A DNA stretch of 64,000 nt from Parasitella parasitica NRRL 2501. Taxonomy: Eukaryota; Fungi; Mucoromycota. A program made the position numbers and the translations under genes. This document shows, one piece after another, positions 23,390 through 59,109 of this stretch. A model generated the notes under the pieces. That model was not told the origin of the DNA, made no database searches, and worked only from the letters and a program-made list of their open reading frames with translations. The stretch lies in NCBI GenBank assembly GCA_025201805.1, contig MU619261.1, positions 146,445-210,444 of the forward strand. Direction: 5' to 3'. Position 1 is the first letter of the stretch; each line of letters opens with the position of its first letter.

Positions 23390-24079
23390 ATGAAACAAGC
23401 TCTCTCAGTAACATCAATATCCATTGTATTGATTATAATATCTTTGATCTTATCAGGACTGGCGGCTCCTCTTGAAAAGCGAAGTATCCCATCATGCTAC
23501 AAGTCGGTCAAGATGACTTACTATTGGATCCCTAAAGAAGGCGAGAAAGACATGAACAATAAAGGCAAGAGTATCAAGCTCAATGGCATCAAAACCAAGA
23601 AGCTCAAAGATAAAAATGGCAAGAAAATCGCAAAGGTTTCCAAGGTGACATACAATAAATTTCAAATGGAAGGCACTGGCTTGTTAAAGTCTGGCACCAT
23701 GGTAAATCTTAGCACAAGTAAGAAGACTTTCATGAAGGTCGATCGTTCAAAAGCTCCTTATGGTTTAGGTCCCAATAACAAGGGGCTGGTTCCTTGGGTC
23801 AGTGTCGCTTCTAATGATATCAAGCTTGGCACCACTCTATATATTAAAGAATTAGACGGTATTACTTTGCCGAATGGTGTATCTCACAACGGCTGTGTAC
23901 GTGTTGATGATCAAAGCTGGAGTATGGGAAGCTGTCAGCTTGACTTCTTTGTCCTTCAGTTCAGTGCTTATCAAGTGTTGGACAAGAAAATCCCCTCAAA
24001 AGTCAAGGCTACCGAGAAATCTTGTAAAGTCAAAGATTATGTAAATTCTAGCGTTAAAAAGTGGGCTGTTCTTGCTTGA
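23390..24079 (+). CDS. Secreted basic 3D-domain (MltA-like/DPBB) protein, paralog A
   Basis: Intronless 229 aa. Signal peptide plus APLEKR Kex2-type site. VSVASNDIKLGTTLYIKELDG...HNGCVRVDDQSWSMGSCQLDFFV resembles the 3D domain. CDS is well supported; domain call is from motif recall. Confidence 0.85.
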   Translation: MKQALSVTSISIVLIIISLILSGLAAPLEKRSIPSCYKSVKMTYYWIPKEGEKDMNNKGKSIKLNGIKTKKLKDKNGKKIAKVSKVTYNKFQMEGTGLLKSGTMVNLSTSKKTFMKVDRSKAPYGLGPNNKGLVPWVSVASNDIKLGTTLYIKELDGITLPNGVSHNGCVRVDDQSWSMGSCQLDFFVLQFSAYQVLDKKIPSKVKATEKSCKVKDYVNSSVKKWAVLA

Positions 24080-26393
24080 TTATGTATATATTTATATTTT
24101 TGATTACTATTTATTTGCCATTGAATGGTAACTCTTGTTTATTTGCTGTCTTTTTTTTTTTCGCAATAAATTTTCATTGTAAATGTATACAAGACAAACG
24201 TTTGAGATAGTAGTTTATATACTTATATCATGTCTATCACGCTTAAAACTTGAACAAAGGATATAAATATTACTTCTATTGATTAAGCTGGTGGTTTCCT
24301 GTGCATCATTATGCTAAATAAAAAAAAATTGTACTTGCAGTTCTAAAGTAGACAGTAAATATATGTGCCAACGCAGAAGAAAATAACGTTGAGTAGAAAT
24401 TTAACATTGCCTTCCCCGAATGGAAAATTGGTATATGGCTTCCAAGACGAAGCACTCACAGGAATCGGGAGCTTACTAGTTTTGCTTGATTCAAGCTTAC
24501 AGACTTTAGCAAATGGGTAAAACTATCACCAAACAATTTCTATTACAAAAAACAACAGATTGCTAAAAACGATTAGAAACAACCTTGGAAAAAACATTCA
24601 ATCGATGTATTGTGAAGATGAGAAAGAGTATAAGCATTATTGTGCTTTAGAGATGAAAACAGTATAAAAAATAAATATTATCAAGTAAAAAAGTCGTATG
24701 ATTAACAGGTTGTGAAAATTTACGCTGTTCTTTGATAAGCTTTCGTTTTACATCTGTTACTTGGTACTTCGATAAAATAAATTAATCTGGTATTAACGTA
24801 TGTATTGAAGAGCAAAAGATTTTTTTTTTTCAAAACTGATCAAAAATTAATTACATTTGCAGATAAGCTTTGAACTATGCGTTACCCATTGGAAATAAAT
24901 ATATAAAGTATATATTAGATAGCCCTAATTATGATGATGTATCAGACAAGTGTGGTTTATTCTTTATACAAAGGTATCGGCGTTTATATGCATTTCTCGT
25001 TGGAGAGTTACTGTTTTTTTTTGTCAGCTAGATATGCCTCATAGCAATTAGGGCATTCAGAAAGTACGCACAGTTCTTGCTTTTATAACCCAAGAAATAA
25101 CAAATCCTTCCGAATGCATAACAGGCTCCGCTGAACTAACAGACTCAACACGACGTCCAAGATCAATAAATGATTTTGACCATGGCCGTATGAGCGTTGA
25201 GTGTACTAGCAGTGGACCCCTGATGTGGATGGTAGAGAGAATCAAAACATAATCTAATACCAACCCTGGATTTCAACTACGCTGCGCAAACAGCTCTTTC
25301 ATGCTAAAACCTCTTGAACCAACACCACCTTTAGTTGCTGATTTGCTAACAAGTTAACAAACGAATGTAGAGAGTTCAGGAACAATATAAGGTTGTATAA
25401 CAGTGCACTGAGTTTTGCTTCGATGGAAATTAAGAAAAAAAAAAACAAATCAGACTGCAGGAAAGCAAGAGATCTTGAGAGAACAAGAAATTCGATGTAG
25501 TGGTGCATACACCTTTAGGAAGTGCGTACTATTTATTGGGTAGTGGTTTACCTGCGGCTGGAAAACGTCCATCACTCTCTCAGATTTAAATTTATGAGCC
25601 TGATAATGAGTTGGGCAATTCTGGGCCAGTGGGAATAAGGTACCTATCAGATGAGGTTGACTCCAGGGTATGTGCAGCATGCCTGATCTTGGATAGGGAG
25701 GTGTTTTTAATAGAAGTTATGAACTGAAAACTTTTATATTCCACCATTTCGTATAAGAAAGTAGCAGAGTGAGGATTTGGATATTTCATAATTTTAGAAT
25801 TATTACATCTTTATTAGAAGAGCACTTATTTTCTAAAGAGGTTGCCACCATCAAAAGTGATGTTGGAATTGAACAGCTTTATGAAGTGAAACTGGCCTAC
25901 AACAACTACACGTGTTGGATGCCATGAAGCGGGCGTATTAAACAGCATGGTTTGCAATTATAATCCATATAGATGATAGCAGCGAGGTTGTAACCAAGAA
26001 GCGGGCGCAAGGTTCAATGATAAAATACGATGAAAAGCTTACTGAAATCAATGGACCGCATCTTCATCCATGATTTTTTGGATATCGTGTCAGATATTAG
26101 ACAAAATAGAGATTTTAACTATCTCAAACGGCGCAAAAATCGATGTTACGAATGAAATGGCAAGCATCATCAATGATGACCGTGGCACATAAGAATTCCG
26201 AGATAATACTTTGCCAGATGAGGAGCTTCTTTGGAAATAAAATAAAGAATGATCAGTGGAGGCCAATACGGTGAGCAAACGGAACAATTTTTTGATCCTG
26301 TTTCGTAAACATCTGAAATTAAATTTGTATGATTGATGCCCAAAAAAAATATTTTTTGAATTCTTCTTTTCTTGCTCTACTCTACATTTGACA

Positions 26394-28116
26394 ATGCGTA
26401 TTAAAATAACAACAGCACTACCTCTACCGAAAAGCCAGTTTTGGTTTGCGATTAACGAAAAGCTAGAGAAACAATCAATTCACCAGCTTACTAAAAAGGT
26501 TGTGGATCAACTTGACCTTTCTACTGATGCAGCTAATCTTAAAATGTTAATGGATGGTTTTCACCTATTGCCACAAACGACAATCAAGGACCTCTTACGT
26601 GACGGCGATCTTGTTCTGTAAAGCAACCTACATCTAATATAACATGGAAGTTGTTTATGTGTACTGGATATATTAACTGTCCTACATTTCTCTATTTTGT
26701 AGAATTAAAGAGGATTTTGTTAAAAAACCTACTACCGCCACAAAAAAGCGAAAATCACGTAAATAACAATGTAAAAAAAATGAGCATTACATGTCACTAA
26801 TAAACTCATCCTAAAGCTGAACAATTAGAAGAAGCTAAAGAAGACAATGCACTGGATGCACGTCCTATAAAAAAGCCAAAAAGGTCCAAATCTAGCATCC
26901 CCAAAGACAGCGTCAAAAATAAGGCAGATACTGTTACGCTCACTCAAAAAGCTGAGAAAAAATCAAAGAAGAAGGGAGAGGAGACAAAGTTGAAAACGAA
27001 AAAAACACCATTAGCTACAAAAGAGAACAAGCAGCAAAGTGCACCTTTTGAAGGGCTTGACAAGACAAAGAAGCGAAATATGCGGCGAAAAACATTAAAG
27101 CAGCATCACCGTATGCTTCAAAGTGAATCTGATATTTCTGTGAGACAGACGAAACAACAGCTTCGACCATTAGAAGAGATTGATCCAGTGCATGAATTAC
27201 ATGTCGAAAAATTAAAGATATCAACCAATGAACCTTCCGAAGGACTCTTGAAAAAGAACAAGAATAAAAAGAAGAATCATTTGAAAGGATCCAAAGCAGA
27301 AAGCAGATTGCATGTCTACTATGAACAGCAAGAAGGCATAGAAACAAATATAGATACGGTTGCCATGGAAACCGTAAATGATGTCTCAAATTCAGGCACC
27401 GTTGCTATGCAAAAAAATAGCACCACAACTACCATAAACAGATCTAATCTTTATGGTCGTGCATTTGTTACCTCTATGGAGTCCGAACCTAAATACAAAG
27501 GCCATCGCGGCCCTGATCGTCAATATCCTATTCACAAAGTTCCTACATTATTTTATGCAGAGGAGCCAAGTCAAGATGAATCATCAGAACCAGCTAAAAA
27601 CATACAGTCTAAAGCCAATACTACAACTGTAATGCCGGTCATGAAAGCCACTGACAAACCAGTTGATTATAACAGCTTCCCAGCTGCTGATTTTGAGTCG
27701 AATATACCTGCTATCGGCGATCTTTTAGCCATCAAGGTAGGCAGTTTCAATTGTTTGTACAGGCGTTTGTGTCAACTGTTTTACAATAGACATTGGAGCT
27801 GACTGCCACTTACACGCCTGAAATTTCAGCTTGGAAGCAAGTTATTCTCAAAGAGATAAATTTACCAAATACAATTACTTTTCAATATATCGAGGGGTTT
27901 GGTAAAACTAGCACTAGAGGCGGTAAATTCGATATTAAAAAACATCAAAAAAAAAGATTTGATAACTGGTATCAAGATGAATATGATGAAACAGAAGATC
28001 AAATACAGGATGAAGAGGAGGACACCGATCTAGTTAATGAAGATGAGCAAGAACAAGATTTGGTTACAGTTAACATTCATGACATATATGACATCAAGAA
28101 CATGTCAAATTTGTAG
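26394..28116 (+). CDS. Coilin-like protein (multi-exon)
   Basis: Ubiquitin-like N-terminus (MRIKI...LLMDGFHLLPQTTIKDLLRDGDLVL), Lys-rich middle with GLDKTKKRNMRRK, and C-terminal PAIGDLLAIK|TLELTATYTPEISAWK resembling the coilin Tudor-like domain. Confidence 0.75.
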
Positions 28117-28129
28117 GGCAAGTTTATTA

Positions 28130-28748
28130 CTATTTTGCTGCCAATTGTTGATATTGCATTTGTAGCTGACCAATCTGTATAATTAAATAAATACTTTGTT
28201 GCTGTTACATATTTACCAAAATTACCTCTTGTTTTTTGGCTTCTGATTTTTGTGTTAAATCATTTAATTGAGCTTCGACACGCTTACTTTTTTTTTTTTG
28301 TCGACAAAAGGGAAACGTAAATAATAGTAGAATCTACAAAATCGAGAAATATAAACTTACATTTCACTCGAGATCAGGTCGAGTCTGTTCTTGACATTGG
28401 TTGAAGCTTCAGATTTATCTTGCTTCACTAAAACAGGGCCGATAAGTTTATAAATGTTGCTTTCATCATCCAAGTTTTCAAATTCCTAGATACACATGTT
28501 AAATCCAAGGCTTTGTTCGAAAAAGATAATATTACAGTGTTGACAAGCTCGTTTTCCTGCTGTTGTGATTCTAAACGTTGTCTTGATTCGATAACTTGGG
28601 AAAGATCTACATGAAGTGGATGTTATAAGAATGTTTCAAGTGCCAAAAAAAAAAAATCAGACGAGGGTAGCAAGGTACCTTTTTGTAATAATTGGAAAGC
28701 CTTTGATTCGGCTTCGAGCTTGGCTTCGATAGCAGATAATGAGCTCAT
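28130..28748 (-). CDS. PFD6: Prefoldin subunit 6 (Yke2/Gim1), 5 exons
   Basis: LEAESKAFQLLQK|DLSQVIESRQRLESQQQENELVNT|EFENLDDESNIYKLIGPVLVKQDKSEASTNVKNRLDLISSE. Confidence 0.95.
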
Positions 28749-28915
28749 TTGTTTATTTATTAAAAGGTATAAAGGCAAAGGAAGGAAGAAATAAGAGGAA
28801 AGGACACGCAAACGTTACATTGTACGAGAAATAAGCCACCACCACCATCATCAACTTTCATGTACGCGTTGATGATTGAGTTTGGATATATACAGAAGAG
28901 GAAGAAAGAAGTTGC

Positions 28916-30025
28916 CTATAAAGCCCTCAATTTAAGCCTTTCAATATCTTGAACTACTTTTTCGATGCTTTCTTCTGTAACCTTGGGTCTCGATTCAAAC
29001 GAGTTTAATTTGAGTGTTGGTGTTGTTGGGGTTGCTGGTCTGAAATCAGCATGAGATTTATGCACTATGTTAACGAAAATCAGCATCTGTACACTTTACA
29101 GTCATTGTAATGCCTACTTTTAAAATAAAATAATTGAATATCAGCAGGATACAATAGCTCTGTCAACGTTGACTTCACCAACTCATCATCTATTTTTGAA
29201 TTACTGTGTGCAGTCCATATTTGATAATTATCTACATTTTGACGACAGGAAACAGATACACCGTACACTGTATTCTTTATCCAATCCATATTCTCTCCAA
29301 TGAGTAAAACCAAAATATCCCTCCAAGCTATAACCGAATGTTGTTTGTTGATTTTAAAATTGTAAGATCCACCATATTCATTATGAGGATCTTCCCTGTT
29401 GCGCTTTTTTGTTACGTTATGACTCGGTAAAAAGCTGAAATTATTACGTACCAAATCGGCTTGATGCCCTTCTTCATAAAATGGAAATTACTCCTGAATC
29501 CAAGTTTATCAGGACCATCAATATTATTATGTACTGCCCAGAATTTCTATAGTGCTCATTAGATGGTATACAGCTACAAGCGATATCTATATCTAGTACA
29601 TACTTGTACTGTTTTCACAGAAGAAATAACTTGTAGATTTGCCTCGTATTCCGTGGCTGGTCGATTAGGTACGAATCTGTTGTATGTGTATGATAAATTT
29701 ATAAAATTGGAATCCGCTTTTATGAGTGATACACTTACTTGTCATACCAAAAAGTCCATTCGTTCTGGAGCGGTATCTCTCCCATGCTTTTTAGCCTTTG
29801 CTTGGTTTCTTTATTCAATATAATGACCTTATTTTTGTAAATATATTCGTCTTTACTATTAGTGTGTGCTAGGGTAATATGATTTAGAGAAGACATTTGA
29901 CCAAAGTAATCTTCAGATGCGGCGGAAGTAACACATTTTAAAGGGCTTTGCGGCTGTTTTCCGGGAAATTGAAAGACTGTGATAGCAGAAGACAGTGGCT
30001 TTAATGTATAATTTGGTGGAGACAT
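28916..30025 (-). CDS. eIF4E-family cap-binding protein, class III (eIF4E3)-like
   Basis: IPLQNEWTFWYDK|FVPNRPATEYEANL...TVQKFWAVHNNI...FHFMKKGIKPIW|EDPHNEYGG...WRDILVLLIGE...YGVSVSCR...YQIW. Confidence 0.9.
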
Positions 30026-30190
30026 CTTATAGTATGTATCTACAAGATGGAAAAAAAAAGAAAGAGAAAGGAGAAAGAAAAAACGTTATAATTTCAATGC
30101 ACTCTACTTTTCGATTTAAACCTCGACAAGAAAGGGGTAAAAGGCAATGCAAGTTTGTATGTAGATTATCATTTTTCTTTCTTCTTCGCC

Positions 30191-31069
30191 ATGAATCTTA
30201 CTGAATCTTATACCCAGTTGGCTCAGCTACGAGTTGATGCATTGCTTCCATCATTGGTTGCAATGCTTTTGGTGAGAATAAACCCAAATGTCCAATACAA
30301 ATAAAGGTGTATTAAAGCTTTTTTCAAGTGCGTAGCGCTTACTGCTTCTAATAATCCTCAAGGCGTTCCTATCATAATGAATCATTATCTGGATCAAGTC
30401 GAATCTGCAGAAGAGCAAGTGAAGTGGATTGAGTATACTCGAAGTGGCATCTTTAAAAGTATTGTACTTTGTGGTGGTCCAAGGGTAAATATATGTAATT
30501 TCATCATTATATTATTTCTGTATTTTATTCTGTATATGATCAGGTAATAAATGCCGAGATAGCGCTTTACAATAATTTGTCTGCTCAGTATCAATCATTG
30601 TTACGAAAAAGAGCTCTCAAGTAGGTCTTTTTATATCATTGAAATGTTGCATTTTGCATAGTAAACAGCTTTAAAAAAAAGCTCACAAGGAAACTCTGCA
30701 GTATGGGATACGCGAGGAATGAATTTTTTTAATCAAGTTTATGGTGTTGAATCAGAAAAAAAATATCAAGTTATTCAAAGGGCTAGCCCGGATTTGTGGT
30801 ATTTTGTAAATGAAGTTTACGGCAACATTGTTTCTGATATGACATATTTGGATGGCATCGATACCGAATTACAAGTAATTGTTAGCTTGATTCAGATAGA
30901 TGCAGGGCCTCAAGTAAGATCTTTCTGTGTCATCATCTAAATAACTTTTATTTACGCAAAAATATAGCTGCAGGATCATATCTTGGGCGCTGAAAGAGTA
31001 GGTGCTACAAAGGAACAAATAAAAGCAGCAGAATTCATTGGTTACAAAGTGAAGCACCTACTGAAATAA
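30191..31069 (+). CDS. AhpD/carboxymuconolactone decarboxylase-like protein (multi-exon)
   Basis: RSGIFKSIVLCGGPR|VINA, RGMNFFNQVYG, PDLWYFVNEVYG, DTELQVIVSLIQIDAGPQ|LQDHILGAERVGATKEQIKAA. Canonical introns. Confidence 0.75.
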
Positions 31070-31801
31070 GGTATTCAAGGTGTTGCAGGATTCCTGAACA
31101 TTATCAAGATTTAAGCTGCATAACAGTATTAGATACGAATAAATAAAAAGAAAAGTGATCTTTTGAGATTAACTTACTCATCCATGCCCTTGAATTTGAA
31201 TTCATCTCCATCAACATTAAAAAAGCGAGGCTTCCATTCAATATTTTTCTGTTCGCGCTCTTTCCTTAGAGTACGTTCTTCATCTTCAACCTTTGTCTTT
31301 TCATCCGTGGCCATATCTTGATTATCCGCTAAAAGCCCTTCAGTTAATTTAGCCCAAAGTCGCCTAGATTCTTTTTCCTCTTGGTTTTCAGGAACTTGCA
31401 GAGGATATTTGACGTAATCACGAACATCGACCATCAGATCAGGCTTCGTTTCTTCTTTAACGCTCTTTTTACCAAGTGACTAAACGTATACTCGTATATT
31501 TAACCTATCCGTCTAATCCATATTTTTGTATTCATGCCTTACCAATAGTCCACTGATACTGCTTTTCTCAGGAGGTGTGTACTTTTTGATAAAAAGTTCC
31601 CCAGACCATTGGCCACTGATCTCATACAGAATTTCTTGAGTAGACTCTCGTTTTATCTTACCAACTACTGAATTGGGTTGGCCAGAAAAGAATCCTTTGG
31701 TTTGGAAATCCAATTCACAAATCAAATCACTTGAAACACATTGAATTGTCGAGGCATCGCCTAATTCTAACGTCATTGTACCAAACCTAAANNNNNNNNN
31801 N

Positions 31802-31857
<56 letters not shown>

Positions 31858-32678
31858 CCCGTTAAACAATATTTGCATTGGAAAAAAAAAAGCAATGAAC
31901 ACTTACAATACACCACGAGCATACATGTTTGGCATCTTTACTTGATATAATTCATCATGCCTTGAAGGCAAGATGAAATTGATGGTACCTTGCATTAAAG
32001 ATGCCACACTGTTGCCATAGAAACGAGATTTGGGTTTCAAATCACCAGTTATTATGACTTTATGTTGTGGACATGTGTAAAAATAAGCTGAAGCAGGTGG
32101 ATGGTGGGACACTTGTTCAGCAATGTAAAACGCTTCAGAATTATCTTGGTATTTGTATTTACAGCGAAAAAATTCACCAAGTACAGGGTTGAATGGCTTT
32201 TTGACGCCCTTTTTTTTCGATAGAGGTTAGATATTTCCAGTGTGAATATAGTAGTAAAGTGCAAATAATACCTTCGGTTTGATATGCCAACCAGACAAAA
32301 ACCATTTAACGACAGCAATGAATCTCTGGGTATCATCCTCAATGTCAGAAACTCTGTACACACAAAAAAAAATAGTGCAGGAATTTAGACCAACTGAAGG
32401 TTCATAAATTAAACAAGACTTACGGTAAAATGAACTCTGGATGTGCCATGAAATCGGTAATTCGCTCAAGCATGCTTCTCGGTTCCAGTACAAATGTTGG
32501 CAATGTTACTCGATGCTATCAACGTTTAATTATTTAACATGTTTATGTTGTACGATAAAAAATCAATTACCAAGTCCATGCCTTTTGTAAGCTGAGAGGC
32601 TATAGCCATGAGGATACTGCGAGACCCCTCTGCAAGTTCCTCTGTGTTGCTTTCATTATCAGCGGTATGGTGAGGCAT
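31058..32678 (-). CDS. Oxysterol-binding protein homolog (Osh6/7-like; multi-exon)
   Basis: KGMDL|[42 protein letters not shown] fingerprint, [15 protein letters not shown]. Confidence 0.95.
31792..31855. other. Assembly gap (10 N) next to a long homopolymer run inside an OSBP intron
   Basis: N run followed by more than 50 A. Confidence 0.95.
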
Positions 32679-34441
32679 TTTTTTTTCTTGGATGTGTGCT
32701 GACAGAAGAAAAGAGAAAAAAATTTAAAGCAAGGTAAGACAGAACAATAAGTGTCCATCTCAAGCCAATCGCATCAAATGAGTCCACTCCGGGCTATGAC
32801 AAGGATACTGTATATGCACTTGGCTAATTCTACTCTTTCAATAATGTATGAAGCAGTTTAAATACAGTCTCTGTGAGTGATTGTGATGCCATGACACGTA
32901 TTATATTACGATAATTCCCATATGAGCATTATCTACGCTTCCAGTCGGATAAAAGTTTTTTCGATTACGAACGTTGTATAAATTTAAGACTGAGTGAAGA
33001 GAGGAAAATGCATTTGAGCTAAATTTTTTTTCCCTATCTTGGGCAAAAAAAAAAAAGAGGAGCTTAATGTTGAAGATGTAGACTATCAAGCCGGAAGCTT
33101 AGAGGCTTTAGCCTTTCGTTGTTTCTAGGTCATATCAATCTATTTCATAGTGAAATAAAGTGTCAAAAATAAGGTTTCATACAATGGTAGACACTTCAGC
33201 TAACTCGGGTCACACATGAAGAAAATTGGGTCCAAACCTGACGTAGAATAAATATAGATTGTGGCCCATTTTGTCATGTATTAGCGATCAATCGTTTACT
33301 ATGTAGCTCATTTTTGATTTCTGATTGGGGTGCTCAGCCCCAAACATAATGACTTGACTTTAGAATCGTTTCTCGATGGTGCGAACAAACGCCAAGTACA
33401 TGTTCATATGCGTGCATTTGGCAATGTAATCGAGATTGTCTCAATAACGATCGCATGTTTATACTTAAAACAGGCTGTTGTACAACCAAGATTTTTATTC
33501 AAACGAGAGCAAAATGCTGGAAACATATTATTTATTGATGGTGATAGAATTGTAAATTGCGTTATAGAAAAATAAGCTTCAAGTAAGTAGCACTTGTATC
33601 CTAAGGGCAAATCATCAATAATATGGATATATGATTTTCGTGTGAATCCAGTTAGACATTATCCTTTGAAAGGCCTTGGCAAAATAAAGGATATCTAAGC
33701 AATATGTTGATGGCAATGTTTTTTTTATAAAAGATTGTTAGGATATTCATATCGTGCGATATTAAGATTGTATTAAAAAGACGGCCTACAAAGCTAACTG
33801 GTGAACATCAAAATTGGCCTTATATAATTAATAATTATCTTTTCTGTTTTATATTTTTCAAATGAAAATACATTATCTCATATGAAGCTTACCAGCTTTG
33901 CATCGTATCGAAGTTACACAGAATGAACATCCGTATACTATGCAAATCGCACAAAATTAGATACGATCAATACAACCATAGTTTATATTTAGCCCGATAG
34001 CGATAAGAACGAAACGCTGAATGACTAATAAAGAGAAGTTTAGTACGTAAGCAAAAGTCAAATTGGAGGCAAAGCTGATATCCTCACCTGACGAATATGA
34101 AGAAACTTATACAATCAATTTGTAATTTTATATATCGGAGCAAGTTGATATAACAAAACTTTGCGCAAAAATCTGATAGATTAAATGTAAAATTGGAATT
34201 TTTGATTTAATTAACCCTTGAAAATTGTCAACCACTTGCTAGGTATAATACTGAAAACATCGGCTGCATGAAGCATCATTTCTCTAGTATTAATTGTCAA
34301 GTTTCTAGTATTTGAAACCATCATTATGTCAGAGTGAATTAGGCACTCGGGATCCAAAAGAGGGGAAAAAGTATAAATACCCTCACAAAGCATTATAATC
34401 AGCTAAAAGAAAATAACTCTATTTTCTATTCTATTTTATAA

Positions 34442-35674
34442 ATGTCTACACCAACTACTTTTCATGGATGGGTCTGTCATGGCAAAGGTAATTCATTGGG
34501 TTACCACACTAAACAATACTGACATCCGTTTGTTTGCTAGATGAGCCAATGAAATGGGAGAAAATGAAGCTTCGTGCTGAAGATGATTACAGTGTCGACA
34601 TGGATGTCACTGATTGTGGTATCTGTGGCTCTGACATACACACAATGGACGCCAACTGGAGTCAGCCAAAATATCCTGTCTGTGTTGTAAGTTTGTTCTC
34701 CAACTTATACTAATCATCTGATTTCCTCAACTGGATTTTTTTTTGTAGGGCCATGAAATTGCTGGTATCTGTACTCGCGTTGGTTCCAAAGTGCATAATG
34801 TGAAGGTAGGCGATCGAATCGGTGTAGGAGCTCAATCCGGCAGTTGCCATCGTCCGGAATGCACTGCCTGCTCAACAGGTTGGGAAAATTTGTGTCGCAC
34901 GCATTTCACAGGCACTTACAATGGCGTCTGGCCTAACGGCGATAAATCTTATGGCGGCTATGCCGACAAATGGAGAGGAGATTGCCGCTTTGTCTTCAAA
35001 ATTCCAGACAATTTGTCTAATGAGGTTGCTTGTACATTCTTTTGTGCTGGTGTCACCACTTATGGCCCACTTAAAAGACATAACGTCAATGCTGACTCTG
35101 TGGTCGGTGTAATGGGCATTGGTGGTCTTGGCCATTATGGAATATTGTGGGCGAAAGCAATGGGTGCTGAGGTGGTTGCTATGTCTCATAACGACAAGAA
35201 ACGCGATGTAGCTTCTGAGCTTGGCGCTGACGACTTTATTGTCACTAGTGATCCAGACTCCTTGGCCAAATACAAGGGCAAGCTTTCTCATATTCTTTGT
35301 ACTGGCACTGGCCAAGACTTTAAGTGTAAGTATTACTTATTAGTATACGGCTAAAAGCAGACTGGATGTTCTAAATATACCAACGTATAGGGGAGACTTA
35401 TACTCGACTTTTTAGACCTAATGGTATCTTTATTAACGTCGGTCTTCCTGAATGGAACTTTCCCGACATTTCTCCTATGCTCCTCTCCATGAGCCAAGTA
35501 ACTATTTGTGGTTCTGCTATTGGCTCTCCTGCCGAAATCGAGGATATGCTTTGCTTTGCTGCCAAGACTGGCGTGAAGCCATATCTTCAAACTTATCCCA
35601 TGAAAGAGGCACCTCAAGCCGTTGCGGATTTCAAGGCTGGCAAGCCTAGATTTAGATTTGTTTTGAAAAATTAA
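34442..35674 (+). CDS. Zn-dependent NADP(H) medium-chain alcohol dehydrogenase (CAD/Adh6-like), 4 exons
   Basis: CGICGSDIH, GHEIAG, GDRIGVGAQSGSC...C..C......C structural Zn site, CAGVTTY, GIGGLGH, GSAIGS, RFRFVL. TATAAA at 34372. Confidence 0.96.
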
Positions 35675-36123
35675 AAAGATTTGCTTGTGTATTATACTAA
35701 TGCTTCTCGTCCTTCTTTTTTTGCTACATTGAATAAAAACACGATTTTCTTGTATTACCTTCTCATGGTTACAAAGTACAAAGCTGAAGAAATACTGTGT
35801 GGGGAAACACTATCTTTTTTTTTTTTTTTTTTCATTTTATATGATATTTTTCCCAGAGTAGGTTATACAAGTGGAAGGCACAGAAAAAGATGAAATTGAC
35901 ATTGAAGCATAAACCAAAGTAGTTTAAGATATTAAAATGCCAAATTCTTCTGGGCCGCAAATGGGTTTTACAGGAGAAACATGAAGTTGTAATTTTATTG
36001 AAAAATATTTGTTTGTTGTTGAAAGATAAAACACAAAATGCAAGAAGCTAAGAGGGATGTTGCTATATTATAAATGACGTTGGGACAGTATTGAATGCAA
36101 TGAATGAAAGGGGAAGGGAATAA

Positions 36124-42011: not shown

Positions 42012-42137
42012 CTGAATAAATCCATCAAAGACTTTCAAAACGATGTTGCCTAGCAACAAATACAACATATATTGTCTCAATATTCTTCTATTTATTGTAT
42101 GATATCCGTTTGGTAACTTCCACGCATTCCACAAACT

Positions 42138-42197
42138 NNNNNNNNNNNNNNNNNNNNNNNNNNNNNNNNNNNNNNNNNNNNNNNNNNNNNNNNNNNN
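42138..42197. other. Assembly gap (60 N)
   Basis: Run of N. Confidence 1.
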
Positions 42198-43381: not shown

Positions 43382-43480
43382 ATTTTATAAAGTGATAAGT
43401 TAGTTTTGCTTAAAAAGTTCGATGATGAAAAGAGAAAAGCAGAAGAAAGAGATTTCCTATGTCTTCAAAAGTTGCGCCCT

Positions 43481-43530
43481 TTTTATACTGGATTTGCTGG
43501 CCGAAGTTGAGATGGTGAAATGAGCCAATC
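43481..43530 (-). promoter_or_regulatory. Putative H1 core promoter (TATAAAA and CCAAT box)
   Basis: Minus-strand GTATAAAA at 43488-43481, about 100 nt upstream of the ATG, and AGCCAATC at 43523-43530. Confidence 0.45.
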
Positions 43531-44716: not shown

Positions 44717-44755
<39 letters not shown>

Positions 44756-44765
44756 NNNNNNNNNN
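44756..44765. other. Assembly gap (10 N) after poly-T
   Basis: Run of N. Confidence 1.
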
Positions 44766-46944: not shown

Positions 46945-47175
46945 CAAATTTTCTTTGATTGTTATTTTTTCAGTCAAAAAGCAATTGCTTTTACACATAA
47001 GCCTTGATATATGCATCACCCAGTGAAAACAAAGTTTATGTCAGTTAGCCCTGATCATGGCGGTACTAGGCAAGCATAGAATATGACTTGGTTTGTTCTC
47101 AATAATGCAAAAGTACAGGTGTTTATGTGCATTTTTTGTATGAAAGTTGATGGTTTCTGTAGCCAACTGTTATAG
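46945..47175 (+). repeat. Dispersed repeat copy 2 (homolog of 40415-40610)
   Basis: TCAGTTAGCCCTGATCATGGCGG...CAAGCATAGAATATGACTTGGTTTGTTCTC and TTTCTGTAGCCAAC match copy 1 in inverted orientation. Confidence 0.8.
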
Positions 47176-48574
47176 GCATAAAGCCGCAAGGCCTTACATC
47201 AGGGTCTCACATCAGTCCCAGGATCCTACAGTAAACCATGGGTAGTCATGATTTACACTTTGCATTTAGACAGTAGAACCCTAGCTTAATGAATGTGTAG
47301 ATAATACATTGAGGGAGATATTACGAATAAAAGAGTAATTTTTTGGCTATTGATACCTTTTACAACTACATAAATTTATGGTGGCTCATTTAGATTACTA
47401 ATCGAGAAAGCTGATTCCTAATAACAATCTACTTGACAGGGCATAGTTTATGGTTATACAAAATGAGCTTCTTTTGTTTGTTCTGACAGTGCCCTCTATC
47501 CTTTGGTGCACAGACCTGTGCTACAGGGACAACCATCTAGATTTGAAACAAGATTTATTCTCCCGTTTACACAAGCGTATAATAACAATTCATTGGACAA
47601 TCTTCAATTGAAGTGCATTCCCATGATCTTCTATCTATAATCTTGTCAGATCGGTCTCGAATTAAAGATCCATTTGTCTACTCATAACTTCTACTAAAAT
47701 GGTCGTGGAACCGCGATCTAACTTGGAAAACGTAGCTATCTGGCACAAATATTGGTATCAATGTTATTTTAAAAAGTTATTAGCAAAAAATACAAGTTTC
47801 ATATCAACATTGTTTCTAATAGTAGACATCACTTTATTCAAATTGAATAATAGAAGAATCACCGAAGACATTTAACGGCATTTAATATAATTAGATGATC
47901 CGATCTATGAAGAACAGTGGTTGTCATGACTACGTAGTCAAAATAATAATGGTAACACTTCTATTCTATAGGTACAAGAAATAATACTGAAAATCACTAG
48001 CTGCTGTTAGAATAGTGAAAAGAACTTGTGGAGGTTTCGATATCAATCCATCAAATGTTGCTAATTCATATTAAATTCAAGTATTTATTGAATGAAAATG
48101 ACTCTAAAAAACTTTTTGATTAGCATTGTGTTTGGTGAAGCAGCAAGCTGCCAGCGTATCCCCCATTAGAACAAGTATCGAAGAAAAAAATCATCTAGCG
48201 AAGCAAAGGTCGAGTTTTTTATCCCATAGTCGGGGGGGGGGTAGAGATAGCTAGTATTTCTTACATAATATTGGACATTTTGAATAAACAATTTTACCAT
48301 TAGTGAAAATATGAAAAAATGCATTCTTTTGACTTTAAACATCAATAAAATCATATATTTGAAGAGCCAAAAATATTTCTTTTTGTTGTACTCAAACATG
48401 TTATAGAGAGCCAAAAGAGAAATACAACATCACTTTGATATGATTAAAGCCATTTACCAGCACACAAACAGCGGAGAGTTAACAGGCTCCACTCAGCAAA
48501 CCCTCTGACTAAAATACTCGAACGAAGAAAATATTTTTTTAGCTTTCCTTTTTACTTTCAAGATATAGAAAATT

Positions 48575-52141
<3,567 letters not shown>

Positions 52142-52441
52142 AGAAACTGTATTGGTATACTTCTTCACACTTGTTTCTTCATCTCACCCATACACACACA
52201 AACACACACTACATCTCTTTATCTCCTTGGTCTCCCCTCCCTCGCCCACATTACAGAGGCTGCGAAATACAAGATGGAATTCGCTAAGAATGTCAAGAGA
52301 TACAGAACGTTGCACATCTTTCAAGCTATTTACTTTCTTTGCAGTTGAACAATCAGTAAAGTTGTAAAACGTTACCTCATTTTGAAGTAATAAAGTAGCT
52401 AAAAATTCTAATAAAGTATGTTTGTTGTTTAATGAATTTGT

Positions 52442-54109
52442 CTATGGGTAAGATGATTGCTGATGTGCTGTTCGCTTCAAAGTTCCCCGTACCTGTGCCA
52501 TAAAGTACACGCTGACAAACATAGCTACAGAAAGACTCAGCATTGGCACGCGCATTGAGAATTTATACGACATGTCTTCACTCCATCCCATCACTGCGAC
52601 AAGAAATACGCCTCCCATATTCCCGACTGTAAATAAATAGCCTGTAGGTATGATCTCACTGATGGGATAAAACAATTCACTAGCAAATTGGAAAAATGCG
52701 GGCGCAATAGCTGTAATATTGGAAAAAAAAAAATCAGGTTAGATGTTTACATATCAAATAGCTGCATAAAATGCCACTTGCCGTATGAAGATAGACCAAA
52801 GCACAAACAAGAGACAATGACGCCTGCTAAAAATCCAAATTCGCAAGACAGGTACAGACATAATACACTCACAGCTGTCAAAATAGATAAACTTGTGCAC
52901 ACTCGCCTGTATTTTAGGGTCTGATCCAGATAGAACCCAACAGCAATGCTTGCCGGGAACCCCACAAACAGCATAGTAGCCCCTAGTAACCCCACCAGTT
53001 TCTCATCTATAAAGTGCTTGAATGGTGGGATCAAAATCTGGGCTAGTAATGTGATAATAGCACATTGGGCACCCATGATGATACAGTATGATCCCAACAT
53101 GTACAAGAACTTTTTCTCCTTCCATAATATGAATGACTGATCTGCAGAATCCACCTCATGCACCATGCTATACACGTATTGCCACGATTAGTTGTATATA
53201 CCTGTGTCAAACTTGCTATCACTAATTACCTTTTCCAGTAGGGCGGTGGTTTTCGAAAGGAAAACCAAATCAAGAACAAAACAACTAAACACATGATGAA
53301 CTAAGAAAACATAAATCATGTGTCAAACTAAATGTTTCCGATGTCTATACGGACCTGTATCAACAGTAGGTTGGGTATATCTGTATCTCGAGTTGCTTGT
53401 TTAACGACGAGGGGCGTCAAGGCACAGCCAGCTGCGATACCTAAATTGTTTGCAGATACAGCAATTGAAGTTGCTAGATTAATCTCATTTTCTGGGAACC
53501 AGGCAACGGCCAATTGAGGAGGTATAGACAACATAAACACTTGCGCTACACAAATAACAAATGTTAGATGATGCACAGTTATAATTTAATGACATACATT
53601 ACCAATTGCCGCTATCGTTTGTCCCAGAAACAAAACTGCAAAGCCATACATGGACGGAATTGCTCCGAGCCATCGAATACCACCAGCAATGGCATTCAAA
53701 CAGGCTCCAACAAATATACCTCGTCTTAGCCCATTTCCTGGTAAGCCGCGTGCCCGATCTTCAAAGTATCTAAATGTAAACTGAATGGCAAAAGGATAAA
53801 TCATCATGTAAACTGACGACAATGAGTTGATGGCATTTGTAGTTGCAGTGCTTTCCTGCTGAAAGTAATATTGAACAAAGATGTATAGACAAGGCGCAAA
53901 AGTGATCCACCTACGAAATTGTTTAGTGATTTTTATGGTCATGGCAACATATTTTTGATTTTTACAAACATGAGCGCACTGGAGAACGAGAAAAATGAAA
54001 AGGAAAATAAAACAAGCCATCGCCAGCTCTCATTTCTGCTGATTGCAGCAGTGGTGGAAGGAGAAAGTAGTGTATCGTATTCTTGCAGAGATTGCCTCTG
54101 TAAAGACAT
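52442..54109 (-). CDS. MFS transporter, FLVCR/SLC49-like (multi-exon)
   Basis: RWLVLFSFSFFSFSSALM|WITFAP, GQTIAAIAQVF...PPQLAVAWFPENEINLATSIAVSANNLG, ELFYPISE. About 12 hydrophobic segments. Confidence 0.92.
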
Positions 54110-54734
54110 GCTGTATTTTATTGTCAATGTAAAAAGAGTGAAAGAGAGAGAATAATGTAGAAAACGCAGTTAAACATCTATTATTTATTTCAAATTCATG
54201 CCGTCAACGCTCCAATGATTGGGAGATATTTTCAAGATCTCAGGGGCCATTAATTTCAAATCTGTACCTGCGTTCAGCATTCTGACTTACCCAAGAGCGA
54301 TTATACTTTTGCCAAGATTACTTGCACGAAAACAACATGCATCTCTCTAACTGTATGTGAAACTTTTTTCTTGATGTTTTTTCATACATGAAACAAAATA
54401 CATGTAGCTAAAAAAAAAAAATTGTGCTCTATACCGTGCTACTAAAAAAATACCATGGTATTTTACCATTTAGTTTTTTTAAATTGTGATATAAATCATA
54501 AAAATATTCGCTCTTTAGACGAGTTACAAGTGGTTAATATAGTTTAATTTCTTGGTGTTATCTGATTCGTATGTTATAATATACGTTGGATAAAATCGTT
54601 AATTCTAGGTCGAAAGAAATTTCTCGAAACAATTTCTTGAGACCGTCAGAACAAAGTAGAAAATGTTATTATGCTAATCCAGAGTAAAAGAATCAAGAAC
54701 ATCAAAAAAAATTTCACTAAGAAGACCTGAGAGA

Positions 54735-56622
54735 ACCGTAGACGTGAAATCGATTTAGTCCATATGGATACGGTGGTAGAGGTTACGGAAGGTATCAGCA
54801 GAAGTTTAGTTACCAAGAGTCACTATATCGTCGACAGGAACACCTTGATGCCGAAGCCCTAGATGATGCCAACGAGCGGATAGATACCCGAGATTCAGAG
54901 GTAGACATAAACTCACGATGAAGCTAGGATGATAGAGCACTAGCCGAGATAGGTTGACGGATGTTGTGGATTTTGGATGAATAATTGAGAGTTTGCAGGT
55001 CCAGTTTGAAGATCAGGATGATCACGCAAAACCACAAACGCTTTCACAGGACACAATTTTAAATTACTGGCATGAGGATGAATAATGAATGGCTTGATGA
55101 TACCCCGCTTCTTTCTGGTTTCTTTGGAAGAGACTCCCTTTAAAGAAGTACGTACCAGATCCGAAGACCGAGGAAATGCGGTCATAGCCAAAACGAAAGC
55201 CAGTTTCTGTTGCAATAGCTTCACCCTAGTACTAGGTCTAGACGAGATAGAACAAGCATACTCTAATGTTGGAGACATATCCTCGGGGTCACGATTAATA
55301 GACGCTGGAGAAGCCTGCCTAGACAAAGAGACCAGATGAGAATTTACCAAGGAGTCTTTACTAATGTTGTCAAGTATATCACGTAGGTGAGATGAGCCAC
55401 CGCTGCGTGAGCCATTTTTAGAATAGAGACCCACAGATTTTGAACTTGGCGAATTGCGGCCAAGAAATTGACCAAATCCGAACGAGAGAAAGTCGTGAAG
55501 GTGTGCCACTCTGTATCGCCCTGGCGAGAAAACAATGCTGATTCTTGCGATAAAGACTGCTACTGTTGTTTGCCAATTTCTGCGCCAAAAATTCCTCGAT
55601 AGCTTGTTCATTGAGGTTTGTCTTTGCATGTTTATCTCTAATAATTGCCACACGGAGAGCATCTAATTCTGTTGTAGTAACGCGTGTTGTGTCCTGGGGG
55701 GGGATGTCGTTTGAACCGCCTGAGGGGGAAGCATCAGCGGGAGCGAAAGAGCCAGACGTTGAATCAGAGAGAACCAAAGCGCACTCGGCAAGTAAGGTAC
55801 CATCAGCATCACCAATGGGGAGCTTCTCCTGAAGAATCTTGTTTAGCACGCGAGGAATCAGATTCTATGGCGGATTTATGAAAGGCTTCTCAAGTCGTCC
55901 ACGGAAGAGTGAAGGCATCCGTGTGGATGGCATCCGGATCCGGCAGCCAGGACATTTACTTTCCTAATAGCTTGGTTGTTCTGTCAGCAAATAGATCGAT
56001 TGCAAAGAGGCCCCATATTCGTCTGAATCTTCTTGAATATGGACGGCTTGATGTGCCATTGGTGCTTGAAATAAGTGCGACGAGACTCCATATCTGCGAT
56101 TTTGTTGTAAATCCCATTGATATGCTGCGCTTGTATCATGATCTTGTGGTGGATGCACCGATCGGATTCCACCATGCTTGTTGATGTACGACAGACTCGT
56201 CGTATTGTCTGCACGGATCAGGATCGTTGAGTTCTCCCGGGATAGGGGAAGTCTTGAGCGCCAAGTGAGCCGCTTTGGAGCTCCCGATAATTGATTGATT
56301 GTTCTGCTTCCAGTAGCGTCCAGTAACCATGAGGCCAACCAGTATTGTTTGTATCCACAAACATTGTTTGCGCAGGTGTGGACGGGAGAAGGGACCAATC
56401 GTTCCATCTCTGGAGGTTGGAATACCACCATTTGAGTTCTTCCAAGTTCGCTGGATCTAAGGGCAGGGGTTGGTCCCAATTTGTTTCCATCTTCACCATT
56501 TGGTTCTTGTGATATATAAGAGATGACGGGTGTATAAGCGAGCCGGAAAGATAGCTTGTATTCGCATGGTTAAGCTGTGAATTACACGGGGTGTTTGTCT
56601 GGTTGGCTTGTCCGAGACCTGT
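54735..56622 (-). mobile_element. Degenerate DIRS-type (tyrosine recombinase) retrotransposon
   Basis: In order: RNase H (LEELKWW, MFVDTNNTGW, SINYREL, ILIRADNTTSLSYINKHGG, QHINGIYNKIADMESR), methyltransferase-like region (DLFADR, YVLAAGSG/PDP, DAF, LNKILQE), tyrosine recombinase (LQQKLAFVLAMTAFPRSSDL, KLCPVKAF, SIRSLASSR, GVPVDDIVTLGN). Many frameshifts. Confidence 0.9.
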
Positions 56623-57078
56623 TTAAAAATAATGTTTACTTTGTTTTGAAACTGAAAAGTGAAAGGCAATGATCAAACTTGCAAGAGATAATAGGTTTAA
56701 CCATTTAGAATTGTTACAGCCTCCTCCTCAAGCTGACCCCCCGTAATTTGATGAAAAAGGAACAACTATTTGTGTATTGATTCTTGATGTTCTTTGTCTC
56801 ACAGCCTCTGGTTGTATTAGTGTTGTGTAAATCACAGCATCTTAAACTAACAAAATATTCTTTAAATAATGTTAATTAGGTACATGTGAGACTCCTCAGT
56901 TTGTGTTGGTTCATTCCGCTAATTAATGTTGTGTTGCCACTTTTTTTTTTACCATAAGCGGTTTAAACCTCTATATTATATGATGCCATTACAGTTGAAC
57001 AATTTTCTTTATTATTTAGAAAATCTGGTATACGTATTTTATGGATTACACTGCAAAATATACATTTGTTAAAGACAT

Positions 57079-57774
57079 TTACAAGACAGCCCATTTCTTG
57101 ACGGAAGAAGTAACATAGTCTTTAGTGGTACAAGACTTTGCAGTTACAGTTACTTTGCTAGGAATCTTCTTGGTCAGCACTTTATAGGCCTCAAACTGGA
57201 GCACAAAGAAATCAAGCTGACAATCTCCCATACTCCAGCCTTCATCATCGACACGAACACAGCCATTGTGCTTCTTGCCGTCGGGTAGCACCAAGCCATC
57301 CATTTCTTTGATGTAGAGTGTTGTTCCTATTTTGATATCATTGGAGGCGACACTGACCCAGGGCACAAGGCTGTTGTTGTCCGCCGACCCTAATCCGTAA
57401 GGGGTTTTTTTGCGATCAAGTTTCATGAAAATACTGTTGCCTTTATCAAGATTGACCAGAGTTCCAGACTGAAGTAAACCAGTGCCTTCCATTTGGAATT
57501 TTTCAAATGTTGTCTTGGAGACCTTGGCAATAGTCTTGCCTTTGCGATCCTTGATGGTCTTGGTTTTCGATCCGCTAAGGGTGACACTCTTGCCATCGTT
57601 GCTCATGTCTTTGTCGCCTTCTTTTGGGATCCAATATTGAGTGATCCTGGCATTCTTCTTGTAACAGCTGGCAATTCCACGTCTATCAAGAGGAGAAGCC
57701 AGTGCCATAGAGCAGCATAAAATTACTGCACAAACAGATAGTAATAAAGTTGTTGAAATTGAAGCCTGCTTCAT
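57079..57774 (-). CDS. Secreted basic 3D-domain (MltA-like/DPBB) protein, paralog B
   Basis: Intronless 231 aa. Signal peptide plus SPLDRR. TQYWIPKEGDKD, FQMEGTG, PYGLG, VSVASND, HNGCVRVDDEGWSMGDCQLDFFV. TATA-like motif about 70 nt upstream. Confidence 0.85.
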   Translation of the reverse strand: MKQASISTTLLLSVCAVILCCSMALASPLDRRGIASCYKKNARITQYWIPKEGDKDMSNDGKSVTLSGSKTKTIKDRKGKTIAKVSKTTFEKFQMEGTGLLQSGTLVNLDKGNSIFMKLDRKKTPYGLGSADNNSLVPWVSVASNDIKIGTTLYIKEMDGLVLPDGKKHNGCVRVDDEGWSMGDCQLDFFVLQFEAYKVLTKKIPSKVTVTAKSCTTKDYVTSSVKKWAVL

Positions 57775-58389
57775 AGTATATATTCGTTATAAAAAAAAAA
57801 GAGAGGAAAGGGGGGGGGGAATGGAATGGGATGTGGAAAGTATATATAGTTTGCGGTCAACGCTTTAAATCAAATGTAAAGAAATCTTGTTGAATTCAAG
57901 TATATATTGAGAATTCCAGTCAAGAGGCGAAAGTAAAAGTATGTAATATATTACTGGAAAAAGAAAGATAAATCAGAAAAAAAACAGCCTTTATATATCC
58001 ACAGTGGCTCAACAGTGCCGCCATTAAAAGAGGAGTATTATGTGTATGTATACAAATTATTTTGTGTATCATTAAAAAAGCGTAATTATCAAAACTGTCC
58101 AAATAGATATGCACGTAATATAGAGAGTAGAATTCTGTACCTATTCCACAGCAGAGTAAGGGTCAACAGCTTTATCAGGCGAATCAAATTGCGTTGTTCA
58201 ACATTAACGATAACAGAGCTGGTCCTGTGCATTTCATGTAGCATGCATAATACTGGTTCTGTCGAATTCTTCTTTAGTGGGAGGCGTGATTAATTCCTTT
58301 TTTTTTTTTGGAGCTACAGTGTCATCAGTTTTCTTTGTTGACTAGTAAAAGATTAATTTATAATGTAAAGTGTAATATGTACGACGCAG

Positions 58390-59109
58390 CTATATATGTA
58401 CCTTTTCATGATTTACGGGGAGGACTGCCCACTTCTTGACGGAAGAGTTGATGTAATTCAGAATAGTACAGGGCTTTTGGACTACAGAAACGTGTTCAGG
58501 AAGCTTCGAGTCGAAAAGCTTGTAGGCTTTATACTGGAGTACAAAAAAATCGATATGACAGCCGCCCAGAGCCCACCCGTGATCATCTACACGGACGCAG
58601 CCATTGTGTACTTTGCCATCTGGTAGTTTCACGCCATCCAATTTTTTAATGTAAAGCGTTGTTCCTTTTTTGATGTCATTAGCGGCAACGCTGACCCAAG
58701 GGACAAGGCTGTTTTCGTTAGAACCCAATCCATAAGGGGTTTTTTTGCGATTAAGTTTCATGAAAATACTGTTGCCTTCGTCAAGATTGACCATTGTTCC
58801 GGATAAGAGTAGGCCAGTGCCCTCCATCTGGAATTTTTCGTATGTAATTTTGGAGACTTTGGCAATAGTTCTACCTTTACGATCCTTGAGAGTCCTAGTT
58901 TTTGCTCCGGTAAGAGTAACCGTCTTGCCATTGTTGGTCATGTCTTTGTCGCCTTCTTTGGGGATCCAATATTGAGTAAACTCAGCTTTCTTGCTGTAGC
59001 AACCAGGGATTCTACGTTTTTCAATAGGAGAAGCTGATGACATGCTACAGCCTAAAATCGTTGCAAAAATTGATAATATTAAAGTTGTTGAAATTGAAGC
59101 CTGCTTCAT
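58390..59109 (-). CDS. Secreted basic 3D-domain (MltA-like/DPBB) protein, paralog C
   Basis: Real start is MKQASISTT at 59109. Signal peptide plus SPIEKRR. Same motifs, with HNGCVRVDDHGWALGGCHIDFFV. Tandem with paralog B. Confidence 0.85.
   Translation of the reverse strand: MKQASISTTLILSIFATILGCSMSSASPIEKRRIPGCYSKKAEFTQYWIPKEGDKDMTNNGKTVTLTGAKTRTLKDRKGRTIAKVSKITYEKFQMEGTGLLLSGTMVNLDEGNSIFMKLNRKKTPYGLGSNENSLVPWVSVAANDIKKGTTLYIKKLDGVKLPDGKVHNGCVRVDDHGWALGGCHIDFFVLQYKAYKLFDSKLPEHVSVVQKPCTILNYINSSVKKWAVLPVNHEKVHI

Follow-up and report, generated by a model that had tools for sequence, protein, structure and literature searches.

Three MltA-like genes on a Parasitella contig

We analysed a stretch of 64,000 nt of contig MU619261.1 of Parasitella parasitica, a mycoparasitic member of the Mucorales; this whole stretch is called the window, positions are counted within it, and residue numbers are those of copy 2 unless stated otherwise. 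The window carries three paralogous genes, one on the forward strand (copy 1) and a tandem pair on the reverse strand (copies 2 and 3), which encode predicted secreted proteins resembling the bacterial lytic transglycosylase MltA and other proteins with a "3D" domain. The features of the three genes are as follows.

23390..24079, forward strand: copy 1, a single-exon open reading frame (ORF) of 229 aa, with a predicted signal peptide and an EKR site followed by the MltA-like domain
23942-23944, forward strand: codon of the predicted catalytic aspartate of copy 1, D185, from alignment to MltA
57079..57774, reverse strand: copy 2, a single-exon ORF of 231 aa; the protein used for the structure model
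57211-57213, reverse strand: codon of the predicted catalytic aspartate of copy 2, D188, from alignment to MltA
58390-59109, reverse strand: copy 3 as an unspliced ORF, 239 aa counted from the ATG
58402..59109, reverse strand: exon 1 of copy 3, 236 codons, with a predicted signal peptide and the entire MltA-like domain
58549-58551, reverse strand: codon of the predicted catalytic aspartate of copy 3, D187, from alignment to MltA
58342..58401, reverse strand: intron of copy 3, 60 nt, GT..AG, placed from a contig joint of sequencing run X1 (see below), the sequence and the public model P0013
58234..58341, reverse strand: coding part of exon 2 of copy 3, a Lys-rich C-terminal tail of 35 aa and the stop codon

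The three ORFs are present exactly as the initial annotation had drawn them, copy 3 in its unspliced form (use of a TTG upstream of its ATG as the start is unlikely), and the features it had listed for them are found in each copy. The proteins are 60-72% identical to one another (67-77% at the DNA level), and in their alignment 79% of the columns are identical on average. Each begins with MKQA and a hydrophobic, signal-like stretch followed by the dibasic site P(L/I)(E/D)(K/R)R, has four conserved cysteines in its mature part, and contains the motif blocks T.YWIPKEG, KFQMEGTGLL, PYGLG, LVPWVSVA(S/A)ND, GTTLYIK, HNGCVRVDD and (L/I)DFFV. The predicted mature proteins are Lys-rich (13-17%) and strongly basic, with a pI of 9.5-9.8 and a net charge of +12 to +21. 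These sequence features suggest that all three are secreted and cleaved at the dibasic site; the proteins are probably processed by a Kex2-type protease and disulfide-bonded.

No N bases occur in any of the three ORFs, and copy 1 is identical to the public P. parasitica protein model P0022. Assembly gaps at 31792-31801, 42138-42197 and 44756-44765 lie between copy 1 and the tandem pair, more than 7 kb from every copy, so that only the linkage of copy 1 over ~33 kb is affected by them. In another Parasitella assembly the protein closest to copy 1 (P0026, 87% identity) shares no contig with the counterparts of copies 2 and 3 (P0001 95%, P0012 81%, P0010 77%), and the linkage of copy 1 to the pair is therefore without independent confirmation. 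The counterparts of the three copies in that assembly are just 95%, 81% and 87% identical, so either the two strains are quite divergent or the family is fast-evolving or turning over.

The genes are flanked by ordinary spliced fungal genes encoding an amidohydrolase, a superfamily 1 (SF1) helicase, an RNA recognition motif (RRM) protein and casein kinase II beta, and their GC content (0.40-0.44) and GC content at third codon positions (GC3, 0.44-0.47) are similar to those of neighbouring genes. The helicase core (AAA_11/AAA_12, Upf1/Sen1-like) is encoded by an uninterrupted 419-aa ORF at 50181-51440 on the forward strand, likely to be a single exon of a longer gene.

Predicted fold and relationship to MltA

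A structure model of copy 2 was built with AlphaFold from 22 family sequences (mean predicted local distance difference test 85.6, predicted template modelling score 0.75). In a Foldseek search of the model, chains of MltA came out on top (7esj, 2gae, 2pnw, 3czb, 6qk4; E-values 2e-5 to 8e-4), and VIA-align superposed it on MltA chains with Z-scores of 9.5-10.7 over 153-163 aligned residues, spanning model residues 34-215 and both domains. A search of the ESM Atlas by shape likewise returned clusters of bacterial MltA and lipoproteins, at template modelling scores of 0.57-0.59. The model contains a double-psi beta-barrel (DPBB), and the structural matches listed for it are MltA, YuiC, PA4485 and other proteins with such a barrel. 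Proteins that consist of the barrel only align over ~90 residues (YuiC and PA4485 at Z ~7), and this difference in aligned length indicates that the fungal protein shares with MltA both the barrel and the inserted beta-rich domain; the model is thus that of a two-domain, MltA-like architecture in which barrel and inserted domain form a groove. For expansins, cerato-platanins, kiwellin, GH45 enzymes and loosenin the alignment is confined to the barrel at Z 5-6, which ranks them well below MltA, as the MltA/3D fold put forward in the initial annotation would predict.

At the sequence level, a combined fungal and myxobacterial alignment was compared with Escherichia coli MltA (L006:4082-5179:-) using hhalign, which yielded a match of 92% probability (E-value 5.5e-7) over MltA residues 249-333. 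It pairs D188 with D328, D177 with D317, and N145, which adjoins D146, with D281. The aspartates of the MltA 3D domain are D281, D317 and D328, with D328 being crucial for catalysis (PMC10127604); D308 and D297 of the mature protein correspond to D328 and D317 of the precursor. The retention of the last aspartate in all three copies, which had been read from the sequence at the outset, was borne out by this alignment (D185, D188 and D187 in copies 1 to 3), and the second MltA aspartate corresponds to the second D of VDD in the fungal copies. Residues D177, D188, H169, G171, C172 and C215 are invariant or nearly so across fungi and bacteria. The cysteines C37 and C185 are particular to Mucorales.

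Several observations weigh against an assignment to the MltA/3D superfamily. The first 3D aspartate lies one residue away from its usual place (ND), some members from Zoopagomycota have lost it, and fungi have VDD.G(W/F)S where the canonical motif is A.D.GG. The hhalign match covers only the C-terminal 77 columns, so that the correspondence between the inserted domain and domain B of MltA is putative and derives from structure superposition only. A HMMER profile of the family found no PDB sequence at E-values up to 10, and the Pfam MltA family PF03562 was absent from the window proteins and from 44 relatives. The profile of the Pfam 3D domain (PF06725), to which the initial annotation had appealed, gave a divided result: the best of the window proteins (copy 3) reached only E = 0.061 and 14 bits against a cut-off of 23.8, but 11 of the 44 profile hits scanned, more distant fungal and bacterial members, match it with E-values down to 9e-10, and nearly all of the bacterial sister proteins carry the domain. 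The family has the fold and the catalytic residues of the 3D superfamily, and fails the sequence test for MltA proper (PF03562). Weighing both sides, we hold with moderate confidence that the three genes encode secreted proteins of the MltA/3D lytic transglycosylase superfamily, predicted to be enzymes. An identity as expansin, loosenin, cerato-platanin or barwin was rejected: the likeness is confined to the barrel, the 3D motif is missing from these families, and no Pfam DPBB, expansin or barwin match was found in the window proteins at E-values up to 1.

Introns and transcription

A public sequencing run (X1), whose kind was guessed as RNA, contains 86% of the sampled words. Its contigs are spliced, with three joints of 59-60 nt bounded by GT..AG on the reverse strand; they leave 59331-59724, upstream of copy 3, uncovered, and one ends 26 nt upstream of the ATG of copy 2 and another 45 nt upstream of that of copy 3. 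Splicing, the gap in coverage and the contig ends close to start codons together mark the contigs as transcript-derived. Copies 2 and 3 are therefore transcribed.

Copy 2 is colinear with its contig and has no joint. In copy 3, splicing takes out the end of the unspliced ORF, three codons and the stop (an in-frame VHI-stop); the public model P0013, which is identical to copy 3, has exactly the C-terminus of the spliced form, the translation of exon 2 having been compared with it by eye. Elsewhere in the same genome, a paralog on contig C76 has its conserved domain interrupted by two canonical GT-AG introns, each ~60-65 nt long. The view that these genes lack introns thus holds for the domain-coding exons, which are uninterrupted in all three copies, and fails for the 3' end of copy 3 and for the C76 paralog. 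Since both of these are spliced, intronlessness is no mark of recent transfer.

The casein kinase II beta gene (59774-60663, reverse strand), with GT-AG introns of 59 nt at 60173-60231 and 60540-60598, provides the deepest contig of the run, at a word depth of ~1700 as compared to ~100-220 for the two MltA-like genes. One unspliced contig of 3.2 kb (54800-57800, reverse strand) extends from copy 2 across two ORFs downstream of it (55964-56479 and 54940-55662), neither of which has a Pfam match; it could represent a long 3' untranslated region, read-through, transcripts that overlap or a DNA component of the run. A bubble in the assembly graph at 57771-57819 connects it to the transcript of copy 3, and loose contig ends at 58257 and 58676, in or near copy 3, continue into sequence that does not resemble the window and may be cross-joins to paralogous transcripts.

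Distribution of the family in fungi and bacteria

The genome of P. parasitica has at least eight loci of the family. Five are additional to those in the window:

contig C3 (L001): encodes P0063, which is 317 aa in length and has an extended Ser/Lys-rich linker
contig C37 (L002): further family locus
contig C50 (L004): further family locus
contig C68 (L005): short matching pieces with stop codons, which by sequence may be a pseudogene
contig C76 (L003): the paralog with two introns inside the conserved domain

A word-based search returned 158 proteins, all named ones being from Mucorales or Umbelopsis with identities of 50-95%, and an exhaustive profile search returned 1089 proteins at E-values up to 1e-3. 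The distant named members come from Bifiguratus, Endogone, Rhizophagus, Tieghemiomyces, Dimargaris, Conidiobolus, Neoconidiobolus, Entomophthora, Basidiobolus and the chytrids Lobulomyces and Clydaea, so the family ranges over Mucorales, Umbelopsis, Endogone, Glomeromycotina, Zoopagomycota and some chytrids. None of the named matches, which are a sample and no census, belongs to the Dikarya; a word search with the alignment of non-Mucorales fungi gave at least eight proteins, and no statement on Dikarya is based on it. The strong positive charge that the initial annotation had ascribed to these proteins is no trait of the whole family: it is found in many Mucorales copies, and the Zoopagomycota members, some Mucorales copies and the bacterial relatives are acidic.

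One distant profile match sits on a contig with eukaryotic housekeeping genes, and another among bacterial two-component genes. A search with the latter retrieved 3D proteins of Enhygromyxa salina, Kofleriaceae, Myxococcales and "Deltaproteobacteria", together with a protein of Basidiobolus (40% identity). Patterns derived from Mucorales gave no match in a scan of bacterial genomes, and patterns from the bacterial alignment, applied to one genome per species, gave 373 loci. The best 80 of these 373 are almost all from Myxococcota (Nannocystaceae, Kofleriaceae, Haliangium, Polyangiaceae, Sandaracinaceae, Bradymonadales); one of them belongs to a metagenome-assembled genome labelled Bdellovibrio, and a close homolog was found in 3 of 61 sampled genomes of its phylum. 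As judged by sequence, 3D-domain lipoproteins of Myxococcota are the nearest relatives outside the fungi, and the likeness to stand-alone myxobacterial 3D proteins that had been noted at first proved correct. No conserved neighbours of the bacterial homologs were found at the best 80 loci (L007-L086). The only recurrent "neighbour" (24 of 80 loci) was a long antisense ORF overlapping the gene itself, which was discarded as a partner gene, being a shadow ORF typical of high-GC genomes.

Candidate substrates and function

Based on the model and on what is known of MltA, the mature protein of ~195 residues would consist of a double-psi beta-barrel carrying the 3D motif and an inserted beta-rich domain, with a groove between the two that would bind a beta-1,4-linked glycan of the N-acetylglucosamine (GlcNAc) type. 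The conserved aspartate would act as the single acid/base in a non-hydrolytic cleavage which, on peptidoglycan, would produce 1,6-anhydro-N-acetylmuramic acid ends. The most likely role would be to attack or digest the walls of bacteria outside the hypha.

Fungi are devoid of peptidoglycan themselves. By analogy we nevertheless rate this polymer as the most likely substrate, on balance and with hardly more than even confidence, because every characterised relative (MltA, YuiC, Bd3285) is muralytic, because the sister proteins come from predatory bacteria, because no Dikarya member was seen among the named matches, which fits poorly with a role in wall remodelling, and because many Mucorales copies are strongly cationic. 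An antibacterial role is a plausible hypothesis that is unproven, and part of the evidence counts against peptidoglycan as the substrate. The cationic charge is restricted to a part of the family, as described above, and MltA itself binds chitohexaose (PDB 2pi8). In relatives, the domain is fused to LysM (P0164, P0184), to a carbohydrate esterase family 4 (CE4) deacetylase (P0247, P0252), to a carbohydrate-binding module of family 2 (CBM2; P0252) or, weakly scored, to a glycoside hydrolase family 18 (GH18) domain (P0155). All these partners deal with GlcNAc-type polymers, and CBM2, CE4 and the weak GH18 match fit chitin at least as well as peptidoglycan. The presence of at least eight paralogs per genome, some with long Ser/Lys-rich linkers as in P0063, could also reflect a role in the organism's own wall.

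The same observations are what commends the strongest alternative, in which the enzymes cut chitin or chitosan, either in the remodelling of their own wall or in opening the wall of the host during mycoparasitism; cleavage could then proceed by hydrolysis or by a lytic reaction forming 1,6-anhydro-GlcNAc. The groove of MltA accommodates a chitin oligomer, the fused domains would suit such a substrate (fungal LysM is usually chitin-binding), the many paralogs are kept across fungi with walls of chitin and chitosan, and the Ser/Lys-rich linkers of some of them recall wall proteins. However, Dikarya are chitin-walled as well and were not seen among the named matches, the strongly cationic Mucorales copies would be repelled by polycationic chitosan, and the nearest kin of the family are secreted by bacteria whose prey is mainly other bacteria. 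We know of no chitin-cleaving member of the MltA/3D superfamily and of no description of a chitin-directed lytic transglycosylase reaction. We regard this alternative as rather unlikely.

A second possibility is that the DPBB fold was kept and the enzymatic activity lost, so that the proteins would bind glycans or loosen walls without catalysis, much as expansins, loosenins, cerato-platanins or kiwellin-like effectors do. Many eukaryotic DPBB proteins are non-enzymatic, such proteins do appear in the fold list at Z 5-6, and some members have the first aspartate of the 3D triad displaced or missing. Yet the aspartate aligned with the catalytic one, the aspartate preceding it and the H(N/D)GC motif are invariant or nearly so across fungi and bacteria, the pattern expected from purifying selection on an active site, and MltA scores far above the expansin-type folds, which makes a loss of activity improbable. 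The proteins are small and predicted to be secreted, and these questions are therefore amenable to direct testing.

Origin of the family

A careful maximum likelihood tree (34 named fungal sequences, 41 bacterial ones, 171 columns) recovers fungi and bacteria as reciprocal clans with support of 100/99, a split with which a quick tree of 193 sequences agrees. As E. coli MltA does not match the hidden Markov model of the family, three distant bacterial 3D proteins were used for rooting (92 columns). In the resulting quick tree the fungi form one clade (Shimodaira-Hasegawa-like approximate likelihood ratio test, SH-aLRT, 97) and stand beside the Enhygromyxa group inside the bacteria (SH-aLRT 84, 84 and 92). 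A single bacterial clan was however not rejected in an approximately unbiased (AU) test (p 0.56), and nesting of the fungal sequences within bacteria, for which the initial annotation had proposed to look, is therefore not claimed.

We conclude from these comparisons of sequences that one ancient exchange probably took place between an early fungus and Myxococcota. A direction from bacterium to fungus is the more parsimonious, given a superfamily of bacterial proteins and a bacterial clan that departs less from the canonical motif, but it is unproven by the trees. For an exchange in the opposite direction, from an early fungus to Myxococcota, one may invoke that the two groups are reciprocal clans, that the tree alone gives no polarity, as the AU result with outgroups illustrates, and that Myxococcota are known for eukaryote-like genes. 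This direction is nonetheless quite improbable in our view, as the 3D/MltA superfamily at large consists of bacterial proteins, the canonical 3D motif and a pass of the Pfam 3D profile are found in the bacterial clan and mostly not in the fungal one, the fungi form a single clade beside the Enhygromyxa group when the outgroup is included, and the path from the outgroup to the bacteria is shorter than that to the fungi (2.7 vs 3.7).

A recent bacterial acquisition, for which lack of introns had been the sign, or contamination of the assembly has a negligible probability and recent transfer is excluded: the uninterrupted main coding exons would fit it, but it is refuted by the spliced fungal flanking genes, GC and GC3 values like those of the neighbours, the spliceosomal introns of copy 3 and the C76 paralog, a fungal clan of its own with a broad spread among early fungi, homologs of 50-95% identity throughout Mucorales and Umbelopsis, and an identity of only ~30% to the best bacterial relatives.

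Significance

In databases the fungal family carries the automatic label "3D domain-containing protein", and we found no paper describing or testing it. It is unmentioned in the text and the accessible supplements of a survey of interkingdom horizontal gene transfer in early-diverging fungi (PMC11291939), and a survey of carbohydrate-active enzymes (CAZymes) from 2013 scored GH102, the CAZy family of MltA, in 0 zygomycetes and 0 chytrids (PMC3652786). The family is a eukaryotic variant of the 3D/MltA kind of enzyme, previously uncharacterised in fungi. As a tentative overall picture, which as a whole we consider possible and short of probable, early-diverging fungi (zygomycetes and some chytrids) would own unrecognised lytic transglycosylases of the MltA type, stemming from one ancient exchange with predatory Myxococcota and amounting to ~8 genes per genome in Mucorales, which would serve as secreted bacteriolytic weapons or feeding enzymes or, alternatively, as chitin-directed lytic transglycosylases.

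A large group of fungi, organisms without peptidoglycan, keeps, expresses and multiplies a predicted secreted enzyme of which every characterised relative cuts that polymer. If the proteins are bacteriolytic, they would be the first eukaryotic muralytic enzymes similar to GH102, and Mucorales, Glomeromycotina and Zoopagomycota would own a class of antibacterial or bacteriolytic enzymes that CAZyme surveys have overlooked. Several of these fungi host endobacteria and some cause mucormycosis; muralytic activity would matter for the competition between fungi and bacteria, for keeping endosymbionts in check and for the liberation of immunoactive muropeptides. If chitin or chitosan is cut instead, this would be a new reaction for the MltA fold. 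The link to predatory Myxococcota also represents a clean case of ancient gene exchange between kingdoms.

Comparison with known systems

Fungal and plant expansins, loosenins, cerato-platanins, barwin, kiwellin and GH45 enzymes have the same barrel superfold and are without the 3D motif. YuiC/Sps of Firmicutes (PDB 4wjt, 4wlk) is a stripped-down relative of MltA, having a DPBB 3D domain with the same catalytic aspartate; only its barrel aligns (Z ~7, 87-90 residues), as it has no counterpart of the inserted second domain found in the fungal proteins and MltA.

The best structural match is E. coli MltA (GH102; PDB 2ae0, 2pi8, 7esj), which has the 3D motif and two aspartates in common with the fungal proteins at an overall identity of 12-19%. 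MltA is larger, with ~335 mature residues as compared to ~195, and its first ~85 residues have no fungal counterpart. While MltA is a bacterial outer-membrane lipoprotein, the fungal proteins are predicted eukaryotic secreted proteins with a Kex2-like site and conserved cysteine pairs; their first aspartate is shifted (ND) relative to MltA, and they lack the PF03562 match.

A functional precedent for the use of this fold in attack is found in Bdellovibrio bacteriovorus, in which Bd3285 and its shorter paralogs Bd0519 and Bd0599 are MltA-like 3D-domain proteins, not necessarily of the same subfamily as the fungal ones; Bd3285 is secreted by the predator against the peptidoglycan of another organism and requires its catalytic aspartate D321 in vivo (PMC10127604).

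The closest likeness is to the stand-alone 3D lipoproteins of Myxococcota (Enhygromyxa salina, Kofleriaceae, Haliangium, Bradymonadales). These differ from the fungal proteins by a lipobox and an acidic low-complexity linker, by HDGC in place of HNGC, by having kept the canonical ADD.GGG, and by an additional CxC...C cysteine cluster in the inserted domain; they are acidic (median pI 4.7), whereas most Mucorales copies are basic. Conversely, an insertion of 11 residues, KDM.N.GK.V.L, distinguishes the fungal members of the Mucoromycotina and chytrid type. In the family alignment (A5) it occupies columns ~166-176 (copy 2 residues ~56-66) and occurs in Mucoromycotina and in a protein from a eukaryotic metagenome, P0163, and not in Zoopagomycota, Rhizophagus, Endogone or bacteria; P0163 groups with Mucoromycotina and chytrids in the tree (support 99). 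The myxobacterial proteins are of the same size as the fungal ones, colinear with them over the entire mature domain at 28-35% identity, and share the motifs LTYYW, EGTG, CF, PWG.GS, LVPF.S.A, GT.LY, LDG..LP, H(N/D)GC, DD and HIDFF as well as the terminal cysteine.

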